The notes beneath the pieces are model-generated. The model saw nothing but the letters and a program-made list of their open reading frames with translations, was not told the origin of the DNA and made no database searches. From NCBI GenBank assembly GCA_002104945.1, contig MCFH01000003.1, positions 1,364,001 through 1,428,000 of the forward strand: DNA of 64,000 nucleotides. Direction: 5' to 3'. Shown one piece after another: positions 66 to 28,736 of this stretch. Positions within the stretch are counted from its first letter, which is position 1, and the number at the start of each line of letters is the position of its first letter. Source of the stretch: Piromyces finnis finn (Eukaryota; Fungi; Neocallimastigomycota). A program made the position numbers and the translations under genes.

Positions 66-3000
66 GAAAAAAATGCCAAAAAGAAGAATAAACTTATGCC
101 AATTCTTCTCGGTGTTACAAAAGAATCAATAATAAAAGTTAATCCAGAAACAAAGGAGGTTATTGAAGAATGGAAGTTTAAGACTTTCAAACGTTGGAAT
201 TATAATAGTACATCGTAAGTTGCTTAACTCTATATAATATAATAAAATGAAATTTATTGAAATGATAATATTTTTAAATAATTATAACTAATTTTTAATA
301 CATTATATTAAAAATAGATTTACCATAGATTTTGGTGAAAATAAGGATTCAAACTATGTTGTTGAAACTGATCAAGGAGTGGAAATTGCAAAATTAATTA
401 ATGATTATATTAAACTTTTATTCAAAATGAAAAATAAAACAGAAAAGAAGGAAGAAGTTGAAGAAAAAGAAGAAATAGCACAAGTTACAGAAGAGATTCC
501 AGTCAGTGTAGTAAAAAATAAGATTGAAGTTGAAGTTAAAAAAGAAGTAGTAGTCAATGATTATTTAGATATATTAAATAGCGCTCTTATGTATCTTAAC
601 AAAGCGGAAGAATGTATTATACAATCTGTAGCAAATAATAATAATATTTTTTTGAATAAAACTTATTATCAAAACTTTAAAATCATAAGTTCTAATATTG
701 ATACCACAAATGATAACATTAAAAAGTTAGGACCATTATCTAAGGAGGACGATATTGAAAAAATATGTAATAAAATATTAACAATTGCTAGTTCAATTGA
801 AGAGATAACAACTTTAGTTGTTTTTAATTCATGCTATTTAATAAATAATAATTTAGCTAGAAATCAAAAAGTTAAGGAGAAGGAATCAAGTTTATTAATA
901 AAAAATTATTACTTTAAAGGTGGAAAAGATATTAAAAGCAATTCGCTTTATTTTATTCCAGACGATGAATCAGTATGTAGTTCTGTAAAAAGTAGGGATT
1001 CATTGACTCGTGATGAATTAAGTATTGGATCTTTTGATTCAAAAATAAATGATAATAGTGAAAATATCAAATTTATTGCTGATAAAATATTCTTACCCGA
1101 AGAATATAAAGTAATTACACACACTAAATATATTATAGAATCATTAAAGGAAACTATTATCAATAATAATGATTTACAGCGTTACACAATATTAAGTATT
1201 GATACACGTATTATTGTTGAAGTTTTGAATAAACTTAAAATTAATATATATGAAAATATTCCAGGAAAATCTGATTGTAATAGTTTTATAAAGAAAATTT
1301 CTGAAGTAAAAAACAATTTTACTTTACTACAAGAAAATATTACAAATGAGACTATAGATATTGAAGATAATGATGATGAAGAAACCACCGATAACCAATT
1401 TGAAGAACGTTATATTGATATGATTAATAACATTGAAAAAAGTTCAAATATTGTGTTTGATTTATCAAAAGATAACTATATTTCAATGATATCTTCCATA
1501 AGACAACTTCAGGAACATTTTAATGAGGTAAAATAATTTAAAGATAAAAGTAAATCCTTATTAAAAGGTTAATAAACTTATTAACATTTTCATAATATAT
1601 AAATAATTTATAATATTTTTTGAATTAGATGTATCCATATTCATATAAAGTTTGTGTTAAGGAATATAAAAATATGAAAGCTTCAACATATTTAAAAAAA
1701 TGTACGCTTTTCTTAAATTTGTTTTCATTATATATAAATGATATTAAAAAAATGTACGGTGATTATAAAAATTTAGAAGTCGAAGATCGTGAAGCTTATG
1801 ATAATGCTTATGGTGAACTTCAATCATTAATAGATATGTTGAGAACCATACCAAAACCCGAAATCAAAGAAGAAAAGAAAGAAGTAGAAGAAACATTAAA
1901 CTTCTATAATGATGTATTGGCAGATTCAGATTTAACTAGGTTGAATAAATTGATAGAAATTTTAAATAATTGTCCAGGCTTAAATGATATTCCAAAAAAA
2001 AATATTACTAGTGATATTAAAAATGATATTATGAAGGTAGAAACTTTAGGAAACTTTATGATTATAATGTGTAGCTGTATTAATGATATTTATAAGTTTT
2101 ATTGTGATTTAAAATTACCAATAACTACTAATGAAAATGAAGATGATAATGAAAGTGATAATATGAATGAATGTGGAATTGAATATGATAAAAAAGATAA
2201 AGCTATTCTTTTAGATATTCTAGAAAATATTACTTTTAAATACTCAGATATTACAATAGGACTTTGTGATATTGTATCTAATGTTGAAAATTGCCATAAT
2301 TCTGGTAAGTTATTTGATAATGAAGTTAACCTATATCTTGAAGAAATAAAAAAAGATCTTTTACATATAATGGAAAATGAAAAGAAAATAATTAATAATG
2401 AAGCTAAACATAAAAATATATGGAATAATAATATTGCTTGTGTTGAACAAATTCAATCAATTATATATAATATATTATCCCACTTCTCTAGTATTAAAAA
2501 TGAAAAAAATAGTGTTGCTTATATTATTTATAAAATGAGGTCAATAATTCAAGATATAGAAGATTATATTATATTATCAGATTCATTAAATATTAATTCT
2601 TTCAAAAAAACTAAAGAATTTATTACGGATCATCAAAATAGAATAAAAAAAGAATATGATAACTTATGTAATGGTTTCAAAGAATTAGTAGAATCAAAAC
2701 TATCCGAAAATGGTACATTACCATTAATAATTAAAACAATTCATATATTTGAGTTATATATTATAATGCTTAAAATATCAGTAAGTTTAATGACTTGTTT
2801 AAGTAAAGATCATCAAAAAGAAGTTTTAATAACAGCAAAAACAGCTGCCTTAACTTTAAATGATATTATTATTAATAAATTGGGATTGAATGAAGATGAT
2901 TTATTAGAAATTGCTGTTTATATGGAAGATGATATAGATATTAATAAAATTAATGATAAAATTAACATTTCAGAAAATATTGATGAGGAATTAGTAACTA

Positions 3001-4100
3001 AATTTAATGAACATTTAGTTGACTTGAAGGAAAAAATGAATAGTACATTTGATATTAAATCGATTATAGCATATAATCTTAATTCTTTATATCAGAATAT
3101 TAATGATATTATTGAAGAAACTAAAGTAAAAGAAACCCCAAAATATACTTCAGATGTCGGTGAATGCGAAAACTATTGTAATTTATTTATTCAAAAGGTT
3201 ACTGAAATAAGCACAAATATTTCAGAATGGGATGATTTTAGTAAAGTTCATAAGATATTCCAATTCTTCTACGCATTTAGAGGTTATTCTAATAAAGTTA
3301 ATTCAATTAACACTGAGAATGATATGAACTTATTGGAATCCAAAAAAGAATTACTTAATATTTATAATAAAATTGCTCCAGTTAATATTAAAATGAAGGT
3401 TGACATTATTTCTCTTATTGATGAGGGAAGAAAAATTGAAAGTGTAAAGTGGGAATCTGTTTTAAAAGATATATTAAATATTGCTGCTCAAATGCAAGAA
3501 TTATTAAAAAAATCTAAAGAAAATCAAGTTAGTTTATATACCTCAACAAAGGTTCAGAAATTAAATAGTGTAGAAAAATATTTTGATTGCATTTTTAGAA
3601 ATAACATAAAGGAATTAGATATATTAAATAATAGGGAATTTTATACTGAATGTAATGAAAACATTCTATATTATATAGTATATAATTCATTATATTCAGT
3701 TCATGTGTTTTTCGTTTCATTAATGAGAAAATGCTACGAACTTTTTAAGATGTCATGTAACAGTCCAATGGAAAGTCAAATGTATATGTTTGACGATAAT
3801 TGGTGTGATTTAATTATTAATTCATTTTTAGAAATCAATGATTCAATTAAAAATGTTTCAAATGTTATTCATAAAAACTCTTCTTATGTCAAAAATATTA
3901 ATATTTATAATGCTTTGAAAAAACTTTATGAAACACTTTATGAATTAAACTATTTATCAACTAAGAGATATATAAAAGATAACAATGAAGAATTATATGC
4001 AACTACTGCTGGTGAAAATGCTATAAGAAGTACTGAAGTTGCTATGACTTTTATGGAAGTAGAGAATTCTATACGTAAAAAATTACTTAATATGAATTAC
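66..4100 (+). CDS. Divergent, shortened talin paralog (FERM F3 subdomain, rod, degenerate I/LWEQ); 5' end lies outside the window
   Basis: Exons 66-214, 318-1527 and 1629-~4100 with GT-AG introns, all in frame. They encode EKNAKKKNKLMPILLGVTKESIIKVNPETKEVIEEWKFKTFKRWNYNSTSFTIDFGENKDSNYVVETDQGVEIAKLINDYIKLL, which aligns with the F3 subdomain of the neighbouring talin. The 3' end is uncertain: either a donor at 4101 or read-through to the stop at 4157. Confidence 0.8.
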
Positions 4101-7800: not shown

Positions 7801-10800
7801 AATTTAGCTAAATTAATTTCAGATGATTATGATGGTGCTACAGAATTTGATAAAGGTTATGATGCTGTTATTGCTTCATTAGATCAATATATGGATTCAT
7901 TAGGCGATATTGAAGCTATGGTTGAATGTACAAGAGATTGTACATATTGTACTAGACAGTATATTAATATTTTAAAAAATATGGCGGATAATGAAGAAAA
8001 CGATGATAATAAATCAAGATTATATGATGCTATTAAAGGTTTAACTGATGCTACCACAAAGATGATTTTATCAGCAAAGGATTTAACAAAAGATCCAGAT
8101 GATTACGAAAAGCAAATGAATTTAAGAAGAATTTTGGATGAAATTAATGATATTATGATGAGTTCTTCAGATAGTGATAGTTTAAGAACCAGAGCTTTCC
8201 AAAAATTAGCTAAAGCCGCAAGAGAAGTTATTTCATCATGTAATCAATTAACATCAGCTGGTAATATGGCTGCCCCATCTAATAGAAATCAAGCTTCTCA
8301 AATTAGTTTGAATCAGGCAGGAAGACGTGTTGGTGAAATTGCACCAAACTCTATTACTGCAATTAGAGATTACTTAAATGACAGAGAAAATACTCAAAAA
8401 CAATTAGCTTTATTGAATTCTTCTAAACAATTAGTTACTCCATGTAAAAATATGTGTGCTTGTGCTAAGACAGCAGCAGCTACTACTGGTGATGCATCAG
8501 CACAAACACAATTATTACTTGGCGCAAAACACACTGCTGAAGATTTAAGACAGTTACAATTAGCTTTAGAATGTGTAGAAGAAGTTAGTGCTGGTTTAGA
8601 ATTAGAAATGGCTATTGCAATGGTAAAACAACTAGAAGAAGATATTTGCCACGTAAAAGAAAATAGGGGTGAGCTTGTTCCACGTGTTGGTCAAACTATT
8701 GATATGGCACAAATTGAATTATCCTCCTCTGTTAAACCATTATCTAATGCTATCACTCAATTATGTAATTCTGCTTCACAAGGTGCTGAAAAATATACAA
8801 GTAATGCTGCTAGAGATCTAGCTAACTATTTACAAGCTGTTGAAGTATGTTGTAAAAATTTAAGTGCTATTAATGAAAGTGAATTAGCTCAAGACGAAAT
8901 ATTAAATGCTTGTGAGAATGTTCTTGGTGAAGCCACAGTTTATTTAAATGCTTCTTCAGAAGCATTAAATTCAGTTGAGGCAAGAGAAAAAATGTCAGAA
9001 TATGCTCGAAGAATGAATGAAGCCGTTGCCGAATTATTAATGGTTCTTCCGGGTTTGAAAGAACTTGAAAATGCTATTAAAAATATTAGTAACGCATTGT
9101 CCAATTTGGCAAATTCCTACACTCCAAATGGAGACATTTCATATAGAGATGCTCAAATGAACCTCAGTACAGATGCCTCATCTTTGGTAGTAGCTTCTAA
9201 TAATTTAGTTAGTGCAGCAAAATCTAATCCAACTGAATTATATAATGCTGCCTGTAAATTTAACGATACTTTTGAAAAAATTAGTTTGGGCGCTCAAGAC
9301 TTTATTAGTACTTGTGAGGATAAAGCTATTAAAGGAAAAATTGTTGATTTATTAAATGAATTAGGTGAATCTAGTCAAGAACTTTTAAATGCAACAAAAA
9401 TGTATTCCTTAAACACTGCAGATCAAGATTTAAAAGATAAATTATTTGCTGCCACTAAATCTATCAGTGATTCAATTTCAAAGATTTTAGATACTTGTTC
9501 AGCAGATGCCCCAGGACATTCTGAATGTAACCAAGCTTCGCAAATATTGAATGAAGCTTCTGCAAAGATTGAAACTGTTAATGATAATAATGATTGTAAT
9601 TTATCTTACCCAGAAAGTATGTCCTTAGTTACAAATAAATCCAAAACTGTTACTTCTTCTATTACTAATTTAACTGCAGCTTCCCGTGGTGGTAATATTA
9701 AGAAAATTGGTCAGGTTGTTGTTGAATTAGCAGAGGCTATCAAAGAAATTACTGATGGTAATATTCAAGCTGCCTACTTAATTGGTATTGCTGATCCATC
9801 TTCCGTTGCTGCAACTTCTAGAGTTATTAACCAAAACCAATTTATTGAAGGTGTTAATGAAATTAAATCCTCATGTAAGATTTTAACACAAGAGGACTGC
9901 TCTAATGAAGCTATTATGGAGGCTGCTAGTATTATTGCTAAATATACAGCTGCGTTATGTAATACCTCAAAGGAAGCTGGTAAAAAATCTAATATTAGTT
10001 ACAATTCTAAAACAAAATTTTTAAACTCAGCAAGAGAAATTGCTACTTATACAGCTGCTCTTGTCAAGTCTATTAAAGAACTTAGTGCCAATAATAATGA
10101 TGAAACTAGAAAGAATTGTGAAGAAAAATCCAATCATTTAATTGAAACTATTGAAGATTTAGTTGCATTCTCTATGTCACCAGAATTTGCAGGTTCACCT
10201 GCTTACATCAGTCCAATTGGTGAAGCTAATCAAAAACCACTTATAACCTATAACCATAGCTTAATTAATAGTGCTTTAGGTTTGGTATCAGCTTTAAAGG
10301 TTGTTTGTAACAATCCAAAAGATAATTCTGCCATTCAAGTTGTTCAATCTCAAGGTCGTCAAATCAATGAAGCATTAAGAAATTTAATTGCTACATTAAG
10401 TACTAGTGCTCCAGGTATTAAAGAATGTGACCAAGCTATTGAAAGAATTACTGATTTACTTAGTGAACTTGATTCTGCTTTAGTTGAAACAGCTGCAGGT
10501 AAATTAAAACCAAAAGATGTTAATGTTGATGCTCACAATGTACAAAATAGTTTGTTAGATGTTATGAGAGCTCTTTCATCTTTATTTGAAGTTATTGGAA
10601 GAAGTGCAAAAGATAATTCCAGTGAATTAGCATCATCTGTTGCTCAATTATCAGGAAATATGACTCAGGTAAGAAATTTTTATTTTTGCTTTATTATTAA
10701 ATGATTAAATAAATCATACTTAATCATTTTTTTTAAATTTTCTTTTTCTTTTTTAATTACGCATACACACCTTAGGGTGTTAACTCTGCTATTGATATTG

Positions 10801-13217
10801 CAGCTAAAACAAGTGACAGAAGCAATTCGGGTAAGATGCTCGAAGATATTAAAGATATTAATGAAATGCTCTTATCATTCTTGTATTCTTGTAAAGATTC
10901 TGGAGGTGATCCATCCAATACAGAAGCTCACGAAAGAATTGACGCAGATTATGACGCTCTTAATAAATTAATGAAAGATTTTATTACCTCACTTGAAGGT
11001 TCATCTGCTGATGATGAAGATTACTCAAAGAATGTTAAGAAGATTGAAGATCAATTAGCAAACTTATCCAATCATGATACCGGTGAAATTAACGAACAAT
11101 ACCAAGTTTATGCCTCTAATGTTGATGAAAAAGGTAAAGAAATACTTCAAAAGATTGCAGAAATTTTACAAGGAAATGATACTAATAGTGATGAAACGAA
11201 AGCCTACGCTGCTGCTCTTGCTGATATATATGAAACCATTGTTGAAAATGGTAAGAATGCCATTTCTACAACAACCGAAGAAAATATTAAACAATCTATT
11301 GAAGATGATTTACGAGAACTTGGTGGTTCCATTATTAAAACTATTGAAGCAATGAAAATTAATAGAGCTAATAGTAATCAAAATACAAAGGTAAGATTAA
11401 ATATTGCTTCAAAGGATGTCATTAACAACACTTCAAACTTAATCAAGGATGCTAAGGAAGGTTCAAGAGGTTTAACTGTTTGTCAAACTGCTATTGAAAC
11501 CATTGGTGAAGTATGTACTGATTTAGAAGCTGCTATTATTTTTGCTAGTGCTGGTCAGTTAGATCCAATAGATACTAAGGATAACTTCTCATTACATCGT
11601 GAAGATTTATTAAAGGAAGCCAAGAACTTAACTGATATTACCAAAGCCTTTGTTATGGCTGCTGCTACATCCAATACCAATCAAGAAGCATTTGCTCAAA
11701 ATGCATTGAATGCTTCAAAGACTTCTATTTCATTGAAGAATGAAGTTAAGAAAGGTGCTATTTCCATCACCTCTGGTGATAAGCATATGCAAGAACAATT
11801 ATTAGAGGCTGATAAAAACGTTTCTGAAGCTCTTAGTAACTTAATTGCAGAAGCCATGAAGACCTTTGGAAAGAATTTAACTGGTGGTGATGCTTTAGCT
11901 TTAAAGAATGCAGCTGCTGAAGAAGTTAAGGCTTTAATTGAATTGATTCGTATTACTAAGATGGTCGGTAATGAAACTACCCGTGGTGTTAGAGCCCTTG
12001 ATGGTGCTTGTGCTGATATTGATGGTGGTATTATTGTATTAGAATCCGATACTCCAGCCATTGGTACGGCTTTACCTGATGAAGTTGTTATGTTAGCAAA
12101 ATGTGTAGCATCTGCTGCCGGTGCCTTATTTACAACATTTTCTTCTGGTAAGCAAGATGAATTAGTTGCTGCTGCCAATAAGATTAAAACATCTGTATGT
12201 GATATGTTAAGAGCTGGTAAAGCTGCTATTTCTAATGCACCAGAAGATAAGAAGGATCCAATGATTAAGGCTCTTAAAGAAAGTGCTAATGCTAGTAAAG
12301 ATCTCTTAAGCTGTACAAAGGACAATTTAGAAAAAGAAAATGGTGACAATAAGGCTGCTATTATTGAATGTTCCAAATCTATTGCCGCTGCTGTTAATAA
12401 TGTTGTAACTGCTGCTGGTGATTTAATTCCAGGTGGTTACGTTGATCCTAATGATCCAAACGTTATCGCTGAACGTGAATTACTTTCAGCTGCTAATGCT
12501 ATTGAAGCTGCTGCTAAGAAATTGGCTACTCTTAAACCCGTTGAAAGACCTCAAGAAGCTAATGAAAATCTTAACTTTGAAGAACAAATCCTTGAAGCTG
12601 TTAAGGCTATTGCAGCTGCTACTTCTGCATTAGTTAGAGCTGCTACAAATACCCAAAGAGAAATTATTGCTATGGGAAAATTATTACCACAAGAAGATCA
12701 AGTTTATTTCTCAGATGGTACATGGAGTGAAGGTTTAGTTTCAGCTGCTAAACAAGTTTGTGCTTGGACCCATGAACTTTGTGAATCTGCTAATATGGCA
12801 ATTAAGGGTAATGTTCAACCAGAAAGAGTTATTGCTGCATCAAGAAATGTTGCCGCTTCTACAACCCATCTTTTATCTGCTGCTACTGCAAAGGTTGATC
12901 AAAACTCTCAAACTCAAATTCGTCTTAGAGCAGCTGCAAGAGCTGTTACACAAGCCACTGAACAATTAGTAAAGTCTGCCCAAGAAAACATGGCTTTAGA
13001 AGATACCGATGCTTTCACCGAATCATTAAAGGACGGTGTAGCCAACTCTCGTGCTCAAGAATTAGAAGCTCAAATGAACATCTTAAAGATGGAAAAGGAT
13101 TTGGAAAAAGCAAGAAACAAGTTATTATACATCAGAAAAGGTCGTTACCAAAAACAAAATGGTGGTGGTGGCGGTACTATTTCAAAGAGAGGTACTGGAA
13201 TGCTATCTGGAAAATGA
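4808..13217 (+). CDS. TLN: Talin, full length (FERM head F0-F3, Ala-rich helical rod, C-terminal I/LWEQ actin-binding domain and dimerization helix)
   Basis: Exons 4808-4867, 4956-5241, 5331-5426, 5519-5789, 6001-6169, 6294-6442, 6570-10668 and 10776-13217 sum to 7572 nt (2523 aa plus stop) with every junction in frame. Talin motifs: KKFFFSDQNIDRNDPIQLNLLYNQVR, SFTLDFGDY..YYNVQTKEGEQISQLISGYIDIILKKK, ILEAVKAIAAATSALV, WSEGLVSAAK, ELEAQMNILKMEKDLEKARNKL. Confidence 0.97.
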
Positions 13218-14249
13218 GTTTTTTTTTTTTTTTTTTTTTTTTCTCATAATAAAATAACAAAAAACTCATATTTACAAAAATATTATAATAAAAAAAATGA
13301 TATTTTAAATAAATGTAAATAAATTATATATATAAAGTTTTGATATAAATTAAATTAATAATATAAAGGACAATCTATAGTTTTCATATAAAAAGATTAT
13401 CTTTAAATTCCCTCTTTTTATTATTTTTTTTTTATTATATTATATTAAATAGATATAACTGTATTTACAAAAGTATAAAATTTAAAAAAAATTAAAAATA
13501 ATAATAAAAAAAAATTAGTAATATAATATTTATGTCTTATAAGTTCCATTTCCCTATTTATAATTAAGTCATATGGATAAGGATATGTTTATAATTTATA
13601 AGTTATTCTATTTTCCAGTTCAATCCCAGTAGAATAAACAGTAAAATAATACTATGTCAGATTTGAGGTATCAATATGATAATTCTTGTCCTATAGTTAT
13701 TTTCATTTGTTAGATTATTATAAGTAAATAAAAGCAATTTTTCGCTGTACTCTTTATATACATTTTATTTTTCTGCTTATTTTATAGGATAGGTGTAATT
13801 CCATTTTATTCAATTTATAGATTTTTTTTTTTTTTATATTTGCTACTTCTTTTTTTATTTTTTGTTTCTCTATTTTAATTCCTATTTTTACTATTTAAAT
13901 TTTTGATAATTTTTCCCTTAAATTGTACCTATTTTAAATTTAAAAATTGGATTCTTTACCAATCATTTTTTTATATAGAAAAAAGAATATATCTTTTATT
14001 AAAAAAAATAATAATTAATAATTTTTAATTTAAATTTTTTTTATAATTATTTTTTTTTTTTTTAAAAAAAAAAAAAATATTTATGTTATAAATAATTAAA
14101 CTATCTAATCGTATTTATTTTAATCCCATCTATTTGTATTTATATAACATAACTAAGTTTAATAGACTTTATATATATATTTAATTTTATTAGAATTTCA
14201 TATATTATTATTTTGTATCAATTTATTTTGTAATAAAAAAAAAAAAAAA

Positions 14250-16373
14250 ATGGAAGACCAAATTAGACAAGCATTTTCACAAGAAAAATTAACAGATGAT
14301 ATAGTAAGACAATTATCAAAATTATGTGAAATATATGAATTATCACCAGAAGAATTAAATGATAACTGGGAAACATATATTATTAAACAAGAAGCTACCG
14401 ATATTAGTATAGAACAAATTGAAGATTTCAAAATTACTGTATTACAAAGATGGGTAGAAGAAGAAAGTAAAAATAAAAAAATAAATACACCTTTCAAGAA
14501 ACAATCTAATACTATGGATATAGACTCTGAAAAAGTTTTCAATGAAAATAGTATTGATAATTTAGATTCTATTATTACAGGAATAACCAAATCAAATAAA
14601 GGAAAATTTCCTTTATTATCACCAAAACGTAATTCAATTAAATCCTCAATTTCAAATACACCTTTCAGCCCAACAAAATATGGAAATATAGAAAAAAAGA
14701 ATGAAATTTCATCACTTACCAAAAAATTCCAAGAAAGAAAAAAAAGAGGAGAATTGGAAGCTGCATTAAATAAAGACATACCAGAACCAACAATTGATTT
14801 TGATATATCAAAAGAAGTTTCTTTAGAATTAATTAATAAGGATCAACAAATTGAATGTTATAGATATATGTTTTCAAAATTGAATGATATTGGAGAAATT
14901 ATGAATAAAAGAATTGATGATATTAGTGAATTAATTTTGAAACATAACAACATTGAATATTTTACACCTCCACAAATAATAAGTTCAGATGAATTTGTTA
15001 CTGCAGGAAGACTTTGTACAGATGATATAGATATTATGGATTCAATAAATACTAAAACAAACGATAGGTCTTATGTTTTAGAAACCAGTCAAAGTACTGG
15101 TTCCGGATATAGAATAAAACTAAACTTTTCACAATTAATAAATGAAGGAAAAGAATATACCATATTCCCAGGTCAAATTGTTGGAGTTAAAGGAACTAAT
15201 TCCACTGGTAATTGTTTAGACGTTACCGAAATTATTGAACCTCCACCACTTCCTATACCAGCCACAAATATTAAAGAACTTTCTCAATACTACGGAAATG
15301 GTAAAGAACAACCTATTTCTGTTTTTGTAGCTTCTGGACCATATACCTGTGAAGATAGTTTAGAATATGAACCTCTGGATGAATTATTTAATAATTATAT
15401 TTTGCCAGAGAAACCAAATGTTTTGATATTGATGGGACCATTTGTTGATGATCGTCATCCATTTATTATGAATGGTGAAACAAAACTTTTACCTGAAGAG
15501 ATTTTCCAAAAGTATATATCCCCACAAATTCAACAATTCTATAAAAGCTCACCTCATTCCACCATTATTCTTATTCCAAGTTTAAATGATCTTCTTTCTG
15601 AGTCCATTTGTTTCCCACAACCACCATTAGATTCTGAAATTACACCTCGAAATGAACAATTTTCTGTTGACGATGAAGCAAGTTATCAACAAAAAATCAT
15701 GGACAATATTCTTAAAAAGCGTAATGCTTTAGGTCTACCAAGTGATTTAGAAAGATTCCACTGTCTCCCAAATCCAGTACAATTTCAAATTAATGATGTC
15801 ATTTTTGCTATCAGCAATAATGATATTATATCCCATATGTATAATGAAGAATTCTATCGTCCAGCTCGTTCCTCTGGATTAGGTTCACCATTTAAAGGTA
15901 GTGTGAAATCCAATCATCGTCCAATGGATAGAATTTCACGATTAACCAGGCATTTACTTCAACAACACAGTCTCTATCCACTCTTTCCATCAGCAATAGA
16001 TGAAGCCAATATTAATTATGAACATGCTAAAGGTTTTTATCTTAATATAAAACCAGATATTTTAATTTTAAATAGTGCTGTTCGACTTTTTGCAAAGAAT
16101 GTTGATGATGTTATTTGTGTTAATCCAGGTCAAGTTGTTCATAAAGTCACTGGTACTTTTTCAAAATTTTATATATACCCAAAGGATCTTACCAGTTATA
16201 TGAAAGAAGTAAAAAAAGAAGAAGAATTAACTAACTTCAAAATGGAAGAAGATGAAGGATTAACCAAGGTAAAAATGGAAGAAGATGATGATCAACATAA
16301 TATGGAAGTTGATCAAATAAATATTTTTAATGATGTTTCAAAGAGATGTCGTGTTGAAATTCGAAGAGTCTAA
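14250..16373 (+). CDS. POL12: DNA polymerase alpha/primase subunit B
   Basis: Single 707-aa ORF. N-terminal LSKLCEIYELSPEELNDNW, OB-fold motif YTIFPGQIVGVKGTN, and calcineurin-like phosphoesterase motifs VASGPYT, LILMGPFVD, IILIPSLND, PNPVQFQINDV, KPDILIL, VNPG. Confidence 0.95.
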   Translation: MEDQIRQAFSQEKLTDDIVRQLSKLCEIYELSPEELNDNWETYIIKQEATDISIEQIEDFKITVLQRWVEEESKNKKINTPFKKQSNTMDIDSEKVFNENSIDNLDSIITGITKSNKGKFPLLSPKRNSIKSSISNTPFSPTKYGNIEKKNEISSLTKKFQERKKRGELEAALNKDIPEPTIDFDISKEVSLELINKDQQIECYRYMFSKLNDIGEIMNKRIDDISELILKHNNIEYFTPPQIISSDEFVTAGRLCTDDIDIMDSINTKTNDRSYVLETSQSTGSGYRIKLNFSQLINEGKEYTIFPGQIVGVKGTNSTGNCLDVTEIIEPPPLPIPATNIKELSQYYGNGKEQPISVFVASGPYTCEDSLEYEPLDELFNNYILPEKPNVLILMGPFVDDRHPFIMNGETKLLPEEIFQKYISPQIQQFYKSSPHSTIILIPSLNDLLSESICFPQPPLDSEITPRNEQFSVDDEASYQQKIMDNILKKRNALGLPSDLERFHCLPNPVQFQINDVIFAISNNDIISHMYNEEFYRPARSSGLGSPFKGSVKSNHRPMDRISRLTRHLLQQHSLYPLFPSAIDEANINYEHAKGFYLNIKPDILILNSAVRLFAKNVDDVICVNPGQVVHKVTGTFSKFYIYPKDLTSYMKEVKKEEELTNFKMEEDEGLTKVKMEEDDDQHNMEVDQINIFNDVSKRCRVEIRRV

Positions 16374-18919
16374 ATTTTTATTTATTTTACTTTTCACCCA
16401 TTAATAATTTATTTTTATAGTGTACTTTTTTTTTTTTTTTTACCTCTTTTTTTAATCACCCTCATATTTAATTATAATTAATTCTTTTTTCTTAAACTTT
16501 TTCAAATCAGATTAATATATATATATATATAATAAAAAAATAAAGATGTAAGTCAGTATATTAATTTATATCATTTATAATGACTTTTTATTGTAAAGCA
16601 TAAATCCTACAATAATACTATTTACTAAATTTTATCTACATCGATCGTCAAATTAATAAAATAATATTTATTTTTAATAAATATATATACTATATTTCTT
16701 ACTACTCTTTTAATTTTTTTAAAAAAAAAAAAAATCTGTTTGAATCTATTATATTTAATAATTTTTATTATTTTTCTTTTCTATCTAAAATTAAACTTTT
16801 TAATATAGTGTAATGAAGAATAGCATAAATGATGGAAAAAAATTCTTTTTTTTTTTTAGTAAAATTCATATTTTAAATTGTTTGTACTTGAGATATAGTT
16901 TTAAGTTCATTGATTTAAACTTAACCACCTTTAAATTTTTTATACCTCATTCTTCCTAACCTTTTTTTTTTAAAAAAAAAAAAGGTATTTCGTTTCAAAA
17001 ATGACCTTTTTAAAGTATAATATTTTTGGTTATTTGTCATTTAGTAATATGTATGAATAAACTTTTTATCTATCTATTTATATCTATATATTGAATTGTT
17101 ATGTCATAGTAATATATATAATTTTTACTAATACTATCGGAAAATGTTATAAAAAGTGTATAATTTATTCATGGTAAACTTTTTTAAAATATATATATAT
17201 ATGTTTTATTATTAATATTTGTTGTTATTTTTTTTTTTTTTTAAAAAGGATTAAATATTGATTCAGTAAAACAAGCATTTTAAAATTTTATACATTCAAC
17301 TATTAGAGTTCTTTTTTTTTTTTTTTTTAACTTTTCTATTAATTGATAAATTCAATTTTTTGCTTTTTATAGCAATGAATTGTATCATCAATTGATAGCA
17401 CTACTTATTTTTCTTATTAAAATTATTAAAAACCATATGCCATTCATAGAATAAAAAGTTTTTTTTTAACTCTTTTTTTTTTTTTATAATTACTTATTTT
17501 ATTCTATCTTTTTTTTATAAAGAAAAAATTTAAAGAATCTAATCTTTTTTTAAAACTCCACCTTTAAAAGATTTAAATGACATTTTAATTATAATACATT
17601 ATATTAATGTAATGTAATAAATAACAATGTAATTGTTAATACATTACAATTAAATTTTTGTATTATTACGAATTATAAGGATTATAAAAAAAAGATGATG
17701 ATGATGAGGAGTGTAATACCATTTTTTGAATATAAATATTTATATGAATCTATTATACTAAAATAGAATTGATATTATATAGTATTAAGATGCTAATATT
17801 AATAATAATGATAGTATTTAAAATAATTAATGATTATTACTATTTCAACAAAATTATTATAACTAAGACTTTTTTAAAGTGTAACATTTTTAAGATTGTT
17901 ATTTACATATATATTCGTTTATATTGTAATATATTTTAATTATTAATCATTTAATATAGTGTATGGATAATAAATCTATAATTTATTCAATTATAATCAA
18001 TAATATATAAATATCCAATCATATTATAGTTGGATTAATTTTCAATATCAATTTTTGTATTCAAATCTTATTTAATATATTACTTCAATTTTTTTATTTA
18101 TACAAAATAATAAATTAAAATATATTATAATTAATTAAAATAATATATTAATAATAATTATAAAAAATATCTAAATCAATCCAAGAAAAAAAAAAAAAAA
18201 AAGGGTGATACAACAACAAAAAAAAATTGTCGTTGAAATAACCGAAGATCAAGAATAAAAAGAAGAAAAAAAAAAAAGATTTTCAATAATAAAAAGGAAA
18301 AGAGTAAAAGTAAAAAGAAATTGAAAGTAGAAGAATAAGAGAGATTCTTTGTTAAAATGGTTTTTTGTTAAATAAAAAAATTATTTATTATAAATGAACA
18401 CTTTTTTATCTGATTTTATTTTTGATGATTTAATTAAATAATAAAAAAAAAATTTTTTTTTTAAATCTATAAATTTTTTATATTAAATTGAATTTTCATA
18501 TAAAAAGAAAAGAATTTCTTTCTTTTAATTGAAAAATTAACTTTTAAATTCTTTTAAACACTTTAGCTATTTTTTTAAAGAAAAAAAAAAAAAGTATTAT
18601 TATAAGCAATTATAATAATATACCTAAAAACTAAACAAAAAAACAAAACAAACAAAAAACAAAAAACAAAAAAACTAAAAAGAAACTTTTTTTTTATTCA
18701 TTCAAAGAAGAAGAAAAAAAAAGTAAAAAAAAAAGAAAAAATAAAATAAAATAAAAAATATACAATAAAACATACAAAATTATAAAACAAAAATACAATT
18801 TAAACAAAACAAACAAAAAAAAGAAACCCATATAATTAGTAATACGATTATAGAGTTTTATATTAATAATAAATTATAAAAAAATAAAATTATAAAAATC
18901 TCAATAAAAAACATTCGCA

Positions 18920-20597
18920 ATGACTACTCAAGTTATGAACTGTAAATTTTAATAATATATTTAATAGAGATAATGCTATTTAAAATCAATACTAAAACAC
19001 TTTTTTTTTTTTTATAATATATTTTGATATATATATGTATTTATAGCACAATACGATTTATTAAAGGTAGATAACTTTTTTTATTTTTTAAAAAAGAGTT
19101 TAACATTTTAGAAATTATAAAATAATAAAATTACTAAAATTATAATATTATCTATTTTATTAGGAAGAAGATATTTCCTACAATGCCTGGAATCAATTCA
19201 CTCAATTAAAAGATTCTCAAACTAAAGTAAAACCAACTTACAGAGTTGTTCACAATGAAGTTGAAGAGGAATATGTATGCAATAACAATATACGTTTAAT
19301 GTTTTAATCAAATGAATAATAAATGAATTATTTTTATATTAATAAATTACTTTTTTGTAATATTGATTTACTTTTGTTTTAAAGGATGAAGAAACTTTAG
19401 TTGGTAGTGCCTGGTGTAAATTCTGTGAAATTAAGGAACATGTTCAAAAGAAACCAGAATACAAGATAGTTTCTAAAGAAGAAGTAATTATTAATTAGAA
19501 TGATATATTTAATAAACAACTTTGTTTTTATATTATAAATGAATTAAAATAATAATCGAATTAATATATATACCTTCATATCATTAAAAAGGAAATTCAA
19601 GAAGAAATTGATGGTGCTTGGAAAGCATTTATTGAAGATAAAGAAAAAAATGCTACTAAAAAAACCGAATATATTAAAGTTTCCGAAGAAAAGGATGATA
19701 CAGAAGAAGAAACCGTTATTGATGGTGCTTGGAAAGAATTTATTGATATTAAAAGTGTTCCAACTAAAAAGACTGAATATATTAAAATCACCGAAGATGA
19801 CTTTGATAATGAAGAAGAAACTAATCAAGAAGAATTTGAAGGTTCCGCTTGGAATAATTTCAAAACCATTGAATCTGAAGAAAAATCCATCAAAAAACAA
19901 CAAAATGTAAATAAGATATATAATTTAAACTGACATAATTTTGAAACTTATTAAAATAATTACTTTTTTTTTTATTGCTAATATCAATATATGCATTTTA
20001 TTATTATCATAAAATACAATTAAATTTAAAAAGGCTTATGAAAGTCCAAAGAAGGCTCAAAGAGTAAAGATTCATTTAGCTGATTGTGCTTGGAACGAAT
20101 TTGTTACTTCAGATAGAGGTTTATTTGAAAAATATGAAAAGTATTTAGAAAGAGTAGAAGATGATATTATTGTCTTAGATGAAACCTTTGCTGAAGAAGA
20201 ATCCGCTGATTCTGGTGCTTCTATTATTAATGAAGGTGAAACTATTGTTATTTCTGATTCCTTTATGAAAGAAATTGAAAACAAAAATGAAGTTGAAGAA
20301 GTTAAACCATCTAAAGAAGTTAAGGTTGATGAAGAAGTTAAGGAAGAAGTTAAACCAACAGAAGAAGTTAAGGCTGTTGAAGAAGCCAAGGAAGAAGTTA
20401 AACCAACAGAAGAAGTTAAGGTTGCTGAAGAAGCCAAGGAAGAAGTTAAGGTTGCTAAAGAAACCAAGGAAGAAGTTAAATCAGATGAAAAGCCATTAAA
20501 GAAGAAGGGAAAATTATCAAAATTCATGAAGAAGACTAAAAAGATATTAAAGAAAATCTTTTCTCATAAAAAAAAGGAAAACAAGAGCAAAAATTAA
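18920..20597 (+). CDS. Uncharacterised acidic repeat protein (376 aa): six A-W-x-x-F repeats, EEVK repeats and a polybasic C-terminus
   Basis: Exons 18920-18941, 19047-19066, 19164-19274, 19385-19483, 19592-19906 and 20034-20597, all with GT-AG introns, give one uninterrupted frame of 1131 nt. The ORF track shows only the last 110 aa in this frame. Confidence 0.85.
20296..20482 (+). repeat. Coding tandem repeat (EEVK / EEAKEEVK units; ~48-bp duplicated unit)
   Basis: Repeated aaggaagaagttaaaccaacagaagaagttaagg translates as KEEVKPTEEVKAVEEAKEEVKPTEEVKVAEEAKEEVK. Confidence 0.9.
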
Positions 20598-21750
20598 ATA
20601 AATGTACATATAAAGTAGGGCAATTCAACGAAAGTTTATCAACAATAACTATATCAAAAAGATGAAGCATTTAGATATTCCAATTTATTATTAAAAATTA
20701 TAAATTGTTATCAAATCGTTAATTTATATTTTATTCTTATACTTTTTTAACTTCAAATATTTTTTTTATATTTTTATTTACAAAAATTTTATATTTATTT
20801 AAATTAAATTATTAACTTTCGAATATATAATATATAATATTTTATTTATTTGAGAGCTTTTTTTTCTATTTTTTACCATTTTTTTAAATTATGAAAAAAG
20901 GTCACAAAAACATAATACTTTAAAAATATTATATAAAAATAATTTTATATAATAATAGTAAGGTATTTAGAAATGGATATTTATATATGAGATTATCTTT
21001 TATCAAACTATAATAATATATCAAATACCAAAAAAAAAAAAGCAAAGCAAAAAAATCACCATTATAGAAAAAAGATAAATATCATATATTAGATATTCAT
21101 AAAACCATCCCATAGAAAAATTTATATAAAAAAAAAGAAAGAGTGAGTAAATGAAGTAAAAATATAACTATATAAATCAAGTTTAAATATAAACGAAGCT
21201 AAAGTCTGAAACTCTAGTGAATGAAAGTGAAGTTATTATTATTATTTTTTTAATGAAAAAATAATAATTATGGATTAAAAAATAACAAAAAGCAAAAAGA
21301 ATAGTAACACAATGTTCAAACTTTTTAAAATAGAAGCTCAAGAATTTTGATAATTTTGTTATTTATAAGAAAGTAAGGAAAACAGCTCCACTATCGCTTT
21401 TATCTCAACTCTCTCTTTTTTTTATATAAAATATATCCAGTATTTTAAACTTTTATATATATATTTATTTTTGTTATAATGATAAATTTTGAACAACAAC
21501 ATAACAACAACGAAATTAAGTAACAATTTATAGTAATATATATTTTCAGGTAAAAAAAAATAGGAAAAAAACAAAAAAAAAAAAAAAAAAAAAAAGCTTT
21601 AAAAAAAAGTAAAAGCTAAAGTGTTAAAAAGATATTTTATTTATCCAAGAAAGCTTTAAAATAAATTGAAATCTAGCTATAGAAAGTTTTTATTTTATTT
21701 TAGGCTTAAATGGAATTTACCAATTTTTAGTATTTAATAAATATTAAAAA

Positions 21751-24128: not shown

Positions 24129-24318
24129 TTAAAATGAATATTAAAACAGATACAACTTTTATTGATATGTAAAATATATATATATTGAAAGTTCAAAATT
24201 TAATAAACAATATTTTATAATATTTATAATATATATAATAATTTATAGTAATGATATATTTATAGTAATAAAATTTCTATTCCAAATGGAATTATCTTAC
24301 TTTTTTTTCCTTTATATT

Positions 24319-24540
24319 TTAATTACTTTGCAAATCTAAATATACAGTTCCTCTTTTGCCTTGATTATCTATATTATTGAGTGGTGATTCTGGTATAGCT
24401 GTATTTGGTAAACTTAAATATATATTTTCATCAGATTCATCTTCTACATTATTATTATTATTAACGTCAACTACTAAATTTTCAGATTTTCCTTCTTTTA
24501 ATTCCAGTGGTTTGGATGTTATGTCATTTGTTAGTGGTTT

Positions 24541-24571
<31 letters not shown>

Positions 24572-27500
24572 ATATTAATTACCCTGTTTTCATTATCTTT
24601 GTCTTTATCATTTTCTTGATTTTTATCGTTAATATCAATGACAGCAGATTCATTATTATTGTCTACTGCAATATTTTCTTCAGATCTTTCAATAAGAGAT
24701 TCATCTAAACCATCTGGTATCCATGGGGTGTATAGTTTAGATGTCATATCTGGATGATCATATTCTGCTTCTAAATAGTATTCTGGAATTTGAGGTAATT
24801 CACTTTCAGCAAGACAACTATATTGTGGTGCTTTTCTATTTTTCTGAGCAGTAATATATATATATTCACTGGCACCATAATTATTTTCTGGGTTTCTTAG
24901 AATACTACTATTACTAAATTGAGTATCCTTTTTATGATTCAAGTAATCAAGTTCAGGCATTTTAACAGATTTTTGTGGTACTTGAAGGTAATTATTACTC
25001 TCGTTATCATTCTTGAATTTTTCTGAATTTACTAAACTATCTAATTGGCCTTTAAGATATTGAATCATATCCCTATCTCTAAGATTACTATCAATGGCTT
25101 CTTGCATACAATTCTTTAAATCTTCTTTCGAAAGACTAACTTGAGAAGAAGTACGACGAACGATACAATTATTTTTATCTTTTTCAAGATTTTCATAGGT
25201 TGAGGTTAATAAAGCAGATTTACAATTTGAAAAGTTTTGTCCATCTGTAAATTGATCGATAGGTGTATTTTTATGAATATCGGCAAAAGTATTCTGACAA
25301 TATTTATAGAAAATAATGGTTATAATAACTAATGGTATAAGTGAAGTAGAAATATTTCCATTTTCTTTTATCCAGAACATACCAACTAAAGTTAATTGAG
25401 AAACTAATAAAGCAAATATAATTCTATTAAAGATAAGATTGTAATAAACTCCATTGTTTTCCCATTGCTTTTTTTTTTTTAAAAAAAAATAAATAAATAA
25501 TATAAAATAAATTTATTACGATATAAAATTAGTAAAAATTTATATGTAAAAATTATAATTATTTTTTAAAAAAAAAAAGAATATATTATTTATAAAAATA
25601 AATATAAAAAAATTTTTTTTTTCATTTTTACCTTAACGTTAATATATAAGATATGATTCTTTTGATTGAGATAATTAAAGAAGAAGTAAAGTACACCCGG
25701 TATTAAAATGAAAGAAGAGATACATGAATATACAAGAATAATGGTAAAGATCAATAAAGGCATAGGATAAACTAAACCATAGTTAAGTGGAATAGTTGTA
25801 TGTTCATAATCCCAAATTTGACGTTTTGTTTTAAATATGAATTTTCTTTTTAACCAACCAATAACAATTCCAGCAAGTGCAGCTAAATCATTAGCAGGGG
25901 ATTGAATACGATAAATAATAAATAAAATGAAAAAGTTTGCACCTTTTGGTAATTGTTCACCTAAAAGGGTAATGATAGATTTTGGATCATTGATAGCATT
26001 TTCCAAAACACCCCAAAAAGTTTTCGATAAAGTACAAATGAATAAGACATTGAATAAAATGAAAAGATAATATTTTTTAAGGAAACTTTTTTCTCTCATT
26101 GAAATAGCTTCAAAGTATTCAAATTTTGTCAACAAATAAATAATGGTAGGTACTAAACTAAGTAAAACGTTAATCAATATAGTTGGAAGAAGACTTCTAA
26201 AGAAAACGTCAACAAGTTCATATTGAGTAATTTTTTGTATGAAGTCTCTGAGGAATTCGATTTCTTGTAATTTTTCCAATTCAGTAAAGGCTAAAATAAA
26301 GTGAACTGGTACCATATAAAAAATACACATGAAGAATAAAGCAACGGATATAGCAGTACTCATAGATTGTTTCTTTTCTATTCTATCATGAAGATTTTCC
26401 CATTGTAAATTAGTTGGATTTGGAGCAGCGATCTTGTATACATTTTTTATTTTTTATTGTATTAAATATAGATTATAATAAATATCAAAATGAAATTTAT
26501 TTGAAAAAAAAAATAATGTTATCCCCATCCATGTAGTATCATAAATAAATTTTATGGTTATAAAAAAAATATTATTAATATCTTTATAATGGAAACAATA
26601 TTGAAAAATACAAAATCAAAAAAAAAAAAAAAACTTTATAAAAAGAGTATTATTAATATTTTTAATACTTACACAATACATTGTATTTTTATTATCAGAA
26701 GTATATAAACTAAGTTGAGAGACGATATGTGCAGCTCTAGTATCTTTAAAAGTAACAAAAGCGGTGTAAGCCCTTTTTTTATCATCTTTATTATCTTCTT
26801 TTTCTTTTTCTTCATTTCTTAATTGTTTAATTTGTTTAGTATATTTTTCAATGTTTGCTTCATATGTTGAAATTGAATCTACAAATTTACCATTCAATGG
26901 GAAAAGTGTACCAGTAAAATGACTTGGACGTAATTTTCTTAATTCTTTTTTTCTTTGATATTCAGGATCACTTTCTTCTTCTTTTTGATTACCTCCTGGG
27001 TTAAAAAGATTATTAAGAGCATTAGGGAATTTTTTCAATACTTTTTTTTCAATAAATTTTCGAATAAAATTCTTTTCTTGAGCATTTTTATCAATATTTT
27101 TTTTATAGGCTAAGTAAGCCTTTTCCAAGTTATAAAGATTATTTCTTCTTTTATTGATAGCATTGGTAAGTTTAGCATTTGCTTCATAAATTATATGAAT
27201 ATCGTCAACTTTACCAACCTTTAAATTATTAAACCAATCAATTAAACTATATTTATCTTGAAGATTAGAAGGAATATTTCTAATCATAACTGTCTTTGAT
27301 TGTAATACTTCAGTTTTAATTGCTCTCATTCTAATAAGACCTCCTTTACGAATAGTTTCCTTATAATATTGGGCATAAATTTTATAATTTCTCCAGAGGA
27401 AAAACATAACAACAAAACTAAAGAAATAACAGCATGCTGAGTGGGCAATAAAAACTAAAGAACCGTCTGGAACATTAGCAATAGAAAAAACTTGAATACT

Positions 27501-28736
27501 CATATTTAAACCAAGTGTGTATTCTTCAGTATAATTTCCTATAGCATCTAAACCATCTGTTGGTTCTTCATCTACATCTTCATTAGGAAATGCATCTTCT
27601 GTATCATTATTTCTTTTAAAATGATAAAATACATCATATTCTTCTTGTCTAACCATATTTATTTGATTCAGATTAATTTGATTATCATAATGAAAACTTC
27701 TATTAGATAAACTATTTGAATCATCCTGTGTTCCATTAACTACTCTCGTTAATGTATCTTTTGTATGTGAAAAATAGTCTAATGAAGCTAATATAGGACA
27801 TATTGTTAATGAACCAATTAAGCATACATATATACCCATACGATAAAAATTCATTAACCTATATTATTTTAACACAGGTATTATATAGATATTAAAATCA
27901 GTTATAAATAAATTTTATTCATTTTACTATATAATAAATTTATTATTTTTATATTTATTTTCCCCCTTCCATTATAATTATTAATTATGTTAAAATAGTA
28001 CTTACATTACTATATATGTTTTCATTTCATTATTATTTTATTTTTAAATATATAATTTTCATTACATTTTCATTATAATTGAAATAAATTATATAAATAT
28101 ATGTGGTTAATAAAACATGTTAGTAGTGATTACACATTATATTTTATATATATTATATAGAGTATATTCATTTTATGATGTTTGTATTCATATTATTCAT
28201 ATTCTACCTGCATCCAGACTAATATTATCCAAAATAAAAGAGTCATCATATTTAAATAACGATTTTAGCCAATCAATCGCTTTTTTTGAAAACGGCGGAG
28301 ATTCTTCTCTTTATAAATATTAATGCATGTTTTTTTGATATTTTTTTTTTTTTTTATTTTTTAATGATATTTAAAAATATTTCATAAAGTATAAAACAGA
28401 ATATAGATAATATAATAATAATATATATAATATATATATTCATAAATATTAGTAATAGGTAAAAACAATTTACTTAAAAAGAATGTATTATTATTATTTT
28501 ATATATTATGTATGTCTTTTTTTTTTATAATATTAATAATAATTATATTTTCTTGATATTTACTGAATATTAATAATTCTTGGAGAATAAACTGGTTTTC
28601 CTAATGATGTATTTCTTAAAATAATAAATACAGTCACAAATGCACTAGTCATAACTGCTGAAAGAACCAGTTGCATTGCAACACCCTTAATGGAGGAATC
28701 TTTAACCTCCCAGTCTTCGACCGCTACGTCAGACAT
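24319..28736 (-). CDS. OSCA/TMEM63 (CSC1/RSN1-like) osmo-/mechanosensitive cation channel, copy 1
   Basis: Exons 28564-28736, 28208-28308, 28006-28009, 26673-27858, 25632-26432 and 24319-25467 sum to 3414 nt in frame. Family motifs: VYSPR, LDAVMLMNFYRM, TVMIRNIP, AFVTFKD..AAHIVSQ, AAPNPTNLQWENL, FEYFEAISMREKSFLKKYY, YGLVYPMPLLIF, WENNGVYY..IFNRI. Confidence 0.93.

Follow-up and report, generated by a model that had tools for sequence, protein, structure and literature searches.

A spliced gene of the gut fungus Piromyces finnis for an acidic protein with six AWxxF repeats and a polybasic tail, a candidate docking scaffold

A 64,000-nucleotide stretch of the Piromyces finnis genome (contig MCFH01000003.1, positions 1,364,001 to 1,428,000 of the forward strand; hereafter the window, with positions counted from its first letter) was analyzed for a gene on its + strand whose product carries six A-W-x-x-F motifs in an acidic setting. 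The gene is real, spliced, expressed and selectively constrained. Judged from its sequence, the product may be a disordered multivalent docking scaffold in which six acidic aromatic helices are joined through an elastic spacer to a basic, amphipathic anchor, a reading that was considered about equally likely to be right or wrong. The protein has already been deposited as hypothetical; as far as the searches described below can see, the family and its motif are undescribed, and sequence matches so far place the family in anaerobic gut fungi alone (Piromyces, Neocallimastix and uncultured relatives within the Neocallimastigomycota).

Tryptophan occurs six times in the protein (residues 23, 61, 94, 131, 171 and 209), each time within A-W-x-x-F, and consecutive tryptophans are separated by 38, 33, 37, 40 and 38 residues. 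An earlier note, made from the letters of the stretch alone, had described six acidic-A-W-x-x-F repeats spaced ~30–45 aa apart, and the measured spacing of 33–40 lies within that range. All six strings quoted in that note were recovered once the exons were read in frame, the motifs being ISYNAWNQF (exon 3), LVGSAWCKF (exon 4), IDGAWKAF, IDGAWKEF and EGSAWNNF (exon 5) and LADCAWNEF (exon 6). Also present were all four submotifs that it had placed after the first four repeats (KPTYRVV, KKPEYKIV, KKTEYIKV and KKTEYIKI). Composition-preserving shuffles of the protein were scored for five or more W..F pairs, which were obtained in 0 of 20,000 shuffles (observed, 6), and the W..F pattern is beyond chance. 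In an alignment of 12 units (six from this protein and six from a sister species), A, W and F were invariant and K-K-x-E-Y followed ~12 residues downstream, and an extra hydrophobic residue was found at +6 or +7 in each motif segment. The surroundings of all six motifs are acidic, the 12 residues ahead of five of them carrying a charge of -3 to -6. The conserved blocks that contain them are 12–25 residues long, predicted helical and nearly proline-free. Overall the protein is 20% E and 17% K, and residues 1–250 carry a net charge of -30. Repeats 3 and 4 are also seen in the DNA, as a 108-nt tandem duplication at 19607–19821 (77% match).

Conservation of W and F in orthologues, set beforehand as a test of the repeat, was examined in seven full-length orthologues. 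All six tryptophans were kept (42 of 42 motifs) and phenylalanine was found in 41 of 42, the sole exception being an F-to-V change in repeat 3 of orthologue P0013. Mean column identity was 0.87 in windows from W-4 to W+7 vs 0.66 elsewhere, and only 1 of 5000 random window sets reached 0.87. Repeat-specific flanks are kept across genera (e.g., EEYExSAWNxFKSIESEEKLKK in repeat 5), which argues that the six copies are old and have been individually maintained. The most conserved block comprises repeat 6 and the helix that follows it (VKIxLADCAWNEFVxSDxxLFEKYEKxLERxEDDII). Linkers between motifs differ in length and sequence among orthologues, and the KKTEY half of repeat 3 is missing from two of them; linkers therefore tolerate deletion. 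Comparison with the sister species gave a dN/dS of 0.27.

Structure was predicted for the full-length protein by AlphaFold2 with an 11-row alignment (mean pLDDT 46.7, pTM 0.15). Helices were returned at residues 5–32, 53–69, 83–106, 125–136, 162–188, 204–232 and 351–375, such that a helix runs across every AWxxF motif (block pLDDT ~50–76). Residues 160–262 folded alone gave three helices (pLDDT 60–73) and a pTM of 0.27, so no confident packing is predicted for this segment. In the ESM Atlas, the model of this protein scores a pLDDT of 0.40. These models suggest a disordered, acidic chain on which amphipathic helices form transiently, with no predicted globular fold. In general terms this fits the expectation, raised in the earlier note, of a short helical repeat or linear-motif array, since isolated helices were predicted over the motifs and no tertiary fold was.

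The C-terminal half, which went unmentioned in the earlier note, has a conserved helix, followed by an EEVKP spacer and then by a tail that is both polybasic and amphipathic, as follows.
20115–20189, + strand: block after repeat 6, consisting of an amphipathic helix RGLFEKYEKYLER (residues 217–232) and an acidic-hydrophobic patch, EDDIIVLDETF (residues 231–241).
20295–20480, + strand: E/V/K/P-rich tandem repeat with a 48-nt (16-aa) unit, EEVKPTEEVKVxEEAK.
20496–20594, + strand: polybasic amphipathic tail LKKKGKLSKFMKKTKKILKKIFSHKKKENKSKN, with a predicted helix at residues 351–375.

Columns of the block after repeat 6 were almost all invariant in 7–9 orthologues. Its helix has a helical hydrophobic moment of 0.60 and was predicted at pLDDT ~70, and a second acidic-hydrophobic patch, GETIVISDSF, is also present after repeat 6. 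Tandem Repeats Finder counted 3.2 copies of the EEVKP repeat unit in P. finnis and 5.7 in the sister species; the repeat was modeled as coil (AlphaFold2 pLDDT ~30) and is likely a flexible spacer. In the tail (KKKGKLSKFMKKTKKILKKIFSHKKK), the last 36 residues have a net charge of +15, the hydrophobic moment of 0.66 is the highest in the protein, and every full-length orthologue keeps the hydrophobic positions. From these sequence properties the tail probably binds membrane. At window position 20493, in the linker just ahead of the basic tail, T was found for C in one of four runs (X4, from another study), which would turn Pro into Ser and is probably strain variation.

The gene model was obtained by reading frames between GT..AG borders on the + strand, in an AT-rich, eukaryotic locus (GC 0.18–0.20). 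Six exons were assigned, with GT..AG borders and introns scored as phase 0 in all cases.
18920–18941, + strand: exon 1, 22 nt, with the start codon; encodes MTTQVMN and the first base of the following codon, then GTAAAT.
19047–19066, + strand: exon 2, a 20-nt micro-exon (..SQYDLLK) with AG/GT borders, present in the spliced sister-species contig L004.
19164–19274, + strand: exon 3, repeat 1, 37 aa; AWNQF at 19185–19199, followed by KPTYRVV; same exon length in the sister-species contig L001.
19385–19483, + strand: exon 4, repeat 2, 33 aa; AWCKF at 19409–19423, followed by KKPEYKIV; a Neocallimastix intron lies at the same place.
19592–19906, + strand: exon 5, both repeat 3 and repeat 4 plus the opening half of repeat 5; AWKAF at 19616–19630, AWKEF at 19727–19741, AWNNF at 19847–19861.
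20034–20597, + strand: exon 6, the end of repeat 5, repeat 6 and the C-terminal parts; AWNEF at 20088–20102, stop codon at 20595–20597.

The predicted product of 376 aa is identical to the GenBank entry "hypothetical protein BCR36DRAFT_366487" of Piromyces finnis (P0011), which surfaced through a word search begun from an orthologue. Exons 3–6 correspond to P0011 residues 15–51, 52–84, 85–189 and 190–376, ordered and ungapped, and exons 1 and 2 to residues 1–14; the gene span in GenBank is 1678 nt, equal to window 18920–20597. Exons were searched singly, exons 1 and 2 were compared as a 42-nt join, and full-length work was carried out on the database protein P0011. The manual splicing on which the earlier note relied was right, since both the exon translations and the gene span match the GenBank annotation. 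Of the extent given there, 18920–20160, the start stands and the end does not, the gene running 437 bases further, to 20597.

Splice junctions were assessed from transcript-like contigs of other species together with the GenBank model. A metagenome contig from a sister, Piromyces-like fungus (L001) carries the whole gene at 78% identity in exon 5, with exons 1–5 equal in length; exon 5 is 78% identical to the metagenome open reading frame P0001. A 1459-nt contig from another sample (L004, with one assembly frameshift) aligned to L001 in six blocks at 99–100% identity, except for the 20-nt micro-exon block. Because its breaks against L001 fall exactly at the predicted junctions, including that between exons 1 and 2, L004 was taken to be a spliced-transcript copy of the gene. 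In Neocallimastix, a 1.4-kb contig from a public run (L007) holds an uninterrupted 359-aa orthologue and aligns to the genome sequence (L006) in five blocks, with introns at the same repeat borders and without the micro-exon. The micro-exon at 19047–19066 (QYDLLK) is found in P. finnis and the sister species and not in the Neocallimastix orthologue, which has four introns and starts MATQVIN|DISNDAW; its presence or absence is a lineage difference in gene structure.

For P. finnis itself, 0.57–0.62 of the sampled 31-letter words of the locus were found in four runs from three studies. By our own count the fraction of 31-letter words that are wholly exonic is ~0.58, and the four runs are probably RNA assemblies because the two shares match. 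The contigs of these runs that lie on the locus are short ones from the 3' exon (20340–20668, depth ~290–1100) and 20–25-nt low-complexity scraps; short contigs also cover the EEVKP repeat at high depth.

Gene order (talin, DNA polymerase alpha subunit B, AWxxF gene) is the same in Piromyces and Neocallimastix. In the window, the upstream neighbors, on the + strand, are talin (its end) and DNA polymerase alpha subunit B, and the downstream neighbor, on the - strand, is an RSN1/OSCA-type channel (window ~8920–16400 and 24300–28700; L009 gene calls).

Relatives were sought at the level of exons, full-length proteins and the repeat. Pfam-A scans at E up to 10 covered all exons singly as well as four full-length orthologues, and nothing reached a gathering score; the best matches (CCSAP, Period_C and DUF7217) were below cut-offs and composition-driven. 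The twelve-repeat profile was searched against all of 1.84 billion representative proteins and returned eight at E <= 0.001, six of which are family members or fragments. The other two, a bacterial repeat protein with DGAWRQF and no Pfam match (P0007, E ~3e-4) and a helicase with HA domains and SAWNEF-like strings (P0008, E ~3e-4), were judged unrelated, each covering only ~10 profile columns. P0008 is 1009 aa long, has ResIII/Helicase_C and ends in HA-domain repeats, each of which follows a short, helix-like IYSAW[NE][ED]F string with a superficial likeness to AWxxF. Word searches begun from exon 5, from the Neocallimastix protein and from a seven-orthologue profile returned only Piromyces finnis, Neocallimastix californiae, N. 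lanati and environmental family sequences from JGI/ENA. PDB sequences searched with the repeat profile, block 160–262 and the N-terminal 252 residues gave nothing, or chance matches at E > 0.6. ESM Atlas look-alikes gave no usable match by features, and the structural rows are meaningless because all have TM <= 0.25. The earlier note had not recognized the family, and no described family emerged from Pfam, the PDB sequences or the 1.84-billion-protein repeat-profile search.

Database sequences in which family segments are joined to other proteins were not taken for real domain fusions. P0002, a fusion to the C-terminus of a P4-ATPase, was treated as a chimeric assembly and not as a true domain fusion; no flippase was found beside the gene in the window, nor within ~10 kb of the gene in P. 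finnis. On a 3.5-kb JGI contig (L005), positions 1629–3215 hold an AWxxF orthologue fused in frame with the C-terminal half of a P4-ATPase, and positions 155–1588 (- strand) hold a WASP/Las17-like open reading frame that is proline-rich, with a WH2 segment GNLLDEIRGGKQLRSV and an acidic DEW tail; this arrangement looks like a chimeric transcript assembly, with no real fusion. In P0018 (232 aa, ENA), 37 residues of the repeat-6 block (KVKIQLADCAWNQFVVSDKNLFDKYQKSLERIEDD) stand between flanks matching RimP (PF02576) and the Obg C-terminal domain (PF09269), and as a real domain fusion it was rejected as almost certainly an assembly chimera.

As a docking scaffold, the protein would be held on an acidic membrane surface, or alternatively on calmodulin, by its basic amphipathic tail. 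The spacer would allow the acidic N-terminal half to reach out, each W/F helix would fit into a basic-rimmed hydrophobic groove of a partner protein, and several copies of one partner, or several partners, could thereby be collected with high avidity. Precedents for the elements of this design are the WxxxF/Y helices of PEX5, which dock PEX14 (PMC8086558; bioRxiv 10.1101/2020.07.23.218024), and the WxxF ligands that bind the AP-2 alpha-ear sandwich site (PMC3794858) and the delta-COP mu-homology domain (PMC6737914). Coat-adaptor appendage and mu-homology domains lead the partner candidates only because they are known readers of acidic W-x-x-F. A further and rather doubtful step would be to regard the AWxxF helix as an undescribed type of aromatic docking motif, on a gut-fungus-specific, membrane-tethered 'fishing line' that gathers six copies of a partner. 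Were this so, AWxxF would form a third spacing class beside PEX5 WxxxF/Y and the coat WxxF ligands, and the partner could be lineage-specific or linked to traits of gut fungi, such as zoospore or hydrogenosome biology.

Several points weigh against the docking scaffold. The conserved blocks exceed the length typical of linear motifs, and the second conserved element, K-K-x-E-Y-x-K-V, is left unexplained by docking. The basic tail could instead be a nuclear localization signal or a calmodulin site. AlphaFold2 alignments had 9–11 rows only, and because they are this shallow a real fold could have been missed. No splice joint was found among the contigs of the four P. finnis runs laid on the locus, which are the short contigs and scraps described above. 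No paper naming the locus tags of the family was found in the literature.

The alternatives were weighed against the same evidence, which lends no support to the specific partners put forward in the earlier note, adaptor appendage domains and Atg8. A specific version of the vesicle-trafficking idea in that note is unlikely, namely that coat machinery (AP-2 alpha-ear sandwich, NECAP, delta-COP mu-homology domain) binds the six acidic W-x-x-F motifs and that the protein, anchored to the membrane through its polybasic tail, is an accessory scaffold or tether of endocytosis or COPI. Both the sandwich subdomain of the alpha-ear (PMC3794858) and the delta-COP mu-homology domain (PMC6737914) have documented WxxF ligands, and the acidic context extends to all six motifs here. 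A lipid-binding tail joined to multivalent adaptor motifs would also be a coherent architecture. The W-x-x-F core is present in six of six motifs, an acidic residue stands at +5 in three of the six (WCKFCE, WKAFIE and WKEFID), and the context is predicted helical. The AP-2 alpha-ear consensus is W-x-x-[FW]-x-[DE] in an unstructured region, whereas W-x-x-F-x-[DE] is matched by repeats 2–4 only. The motifs are predicted to be helical and lie in long, near-proline-free conserved blocks, unlike known appendage ligands, and such motifs give no role to the invariant Ala at -1 or to the KKxEY element.

Also judged unlikely is a self-contained helical repeat structure, formed either as E/K-stabilized single helices with aromatic caps or as a bundle, that would serve as a spacer or oligomerization module. 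AlphaFold2 helices of 24–30 residues pass through repeats 1, 3 and 5, with two at repeat 6, and both the E/K-rich sequence (20% E, 17% K) and the conserved blocks, being longer than linear motifs, are in keeping with such a structure. Inter-helix contacts are not confident, however (pTM 0.15–0.27), and the variable linkers, together with the two orthologues lacking the second half of repeat 3, suit beads on a string and not a packed repeat.

Improbable is a nuclear acidic protein, in which the basic tail would be a nuclear localization signal and the W/F helices would resemble activation-domain or histone-chaperone motifs. The charge asymmetry of the protein fits (body net -30, last 36 residues +15), and acidic, aromatic, helix-prone segments are typical of activation-domain and histone-chaperone motifs. 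The tail hydrophobic residues are nevertheless kept in helical register in all orthologues and give the highest hydrophobic moment in the protein, which points to a lipid- or calmodulin-binding surface rather than importin binding, and no DNA-binding or chromatin domain was found in the Pfam scans.

Very improbable is an actin factor at the membrane, sequestering or nucleating, whose tandem WH2/beta-thymosin-like repeats would bind actin monomers. Thymosin beta-4 combines a helix with LKKTET, and its likeness to the AWxxF repeats, in the period of 33–40 aa, the three-turn amphipathic helix (W, F and I/L at i, i+3 and i+6) and the T/Q-K-K-T/P-E-Y stretch after it, was used as a lead only. In repeats 2–4, KKTEY or KKPEY stands 5–6 residues past the third hydrophobic position. 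The Pfam models WH2 (PF02205) and Thymosin (PF01290) nevertheless matched neither the single-repeat exons nor the full protein at E up to 10, a comparison by hhalign of the repeat profile with the WH2 segment of the gut-fungus WASP-like protein (L005:263-382:-) returned a probability of 0.04, and no PDB sequence match was obtained at E up to 10. The Leu position of LKKT/LKKV is occupied by T, Q, V, S or N in these repeats, which are acidic. Membership in the WH2/beta-thymosin group was rejected, the Pfam and hhalign tests having all failed.

Least probable of all is an array of Atg8 interaction motifs (LIRs) in a selective-autophagy receptor or adaptor, the Atg8 binding through acidic W-x-x-hydrophobic that the earlier note had entertained. 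In its favor, every repeat has acidic residues ahead of the aromatic one, and the secondary element E-Y-I-K-V/I in the third and fourth repeats conforms to the core [WFY]-x-x-[LIV]. The conserved W motif itself breaks the core rule, having F in place of L/I/V at +3 (41 of 42 orthologue motifs), and the third and fourth repeats carry K at +1; the protein also lacks a cargo-binding domain. A LIR has the core [W/F/Y]-x-x-[L/I/V] after acidic residues and is bound as an extended strand, whereas the AWxxF motifs are predicted to be helical.

Anaerobic gut fungi are important degraders of plant biomass, and most of their lineage-specific proteins are without known function. Among such orphans the AWxxF protein stands out as short, apparently well expressed and under purifying selection, with a clean, testable design. 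Should its partner prove to be coat or membrane machinery, the protein would be something added to fungal trafficking in this lineage alone; with a new partner, AWxxF would join a small set of known aromatic docking codes. At present it is a well-documented uncharacterized family and not a discovery of function.

The AWxxF protein shares features with several known systems. Ligands of coats, such as NECAP 1 for the alpha-ear of AP-2 and Gcs1/ArfGAP1 for the delta-COP mu-homology domain, have the W-x-x-F core in an acidic setting, as here, and recruit accessory proteins to coats (PMC3794858, PMC6737914). Known coat ligands occur in one to few copies, often C-terminal and unstructured, whereas six are found here in long helix-prone blocks with Ala at -1 and KKxEY. 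Beta-thymosin/WH2 proteins resemble the family in their period of ~35–40 aa and in having a K-K-T-E-like stretch after an amphipathic helix; their conserved LKKT Leu is not conserved here, and the repeats here are acidic.

The N-terminal domain of PEX5, much like the picture predicted here, is disordered and has several (eight in human) short amphipathic helices that contain one or two aromatic residues; any of these helices can dock the same small domain, whence its multivalency (PMC8086558; bioRxiv 10.1101/2020.07.23.218024). The aromatic residues are spaced i,i+4 in PEX5 and i,i+3 in AWxxF, all six motifs here being W-x-x-F and none W-x-x-x-[FY]. PEX5 ends in a TPR cargo domain, whereas the AWxxF protein ends in a spacer and polybasic tail; neither a TPR nor any other domain was found in Pfam scans of the AWxxF protein, and no sequence relationship to PEX5 was detected.

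In the MARCKS effector domain, the adducin tail and the C-terminus of yeast Ist2, a Lys cluster interleaved with Phe/Leu/Ile and Ser/Thr ends an otherwise acidic, disordered protein, as is predicted here. An effector tail of the MARCKS type is Lys-rich, with aromatic or hydrophobic residues in between, and binds acidic lipid or calmodulin. These polybasic membrane tails have no sequence homology with the AWxxF tail, and no Pfam match to MARCKS was found; in composition and amphipathicity the AWxxF tail is like the MARCKS type (+15, moment 0.66).

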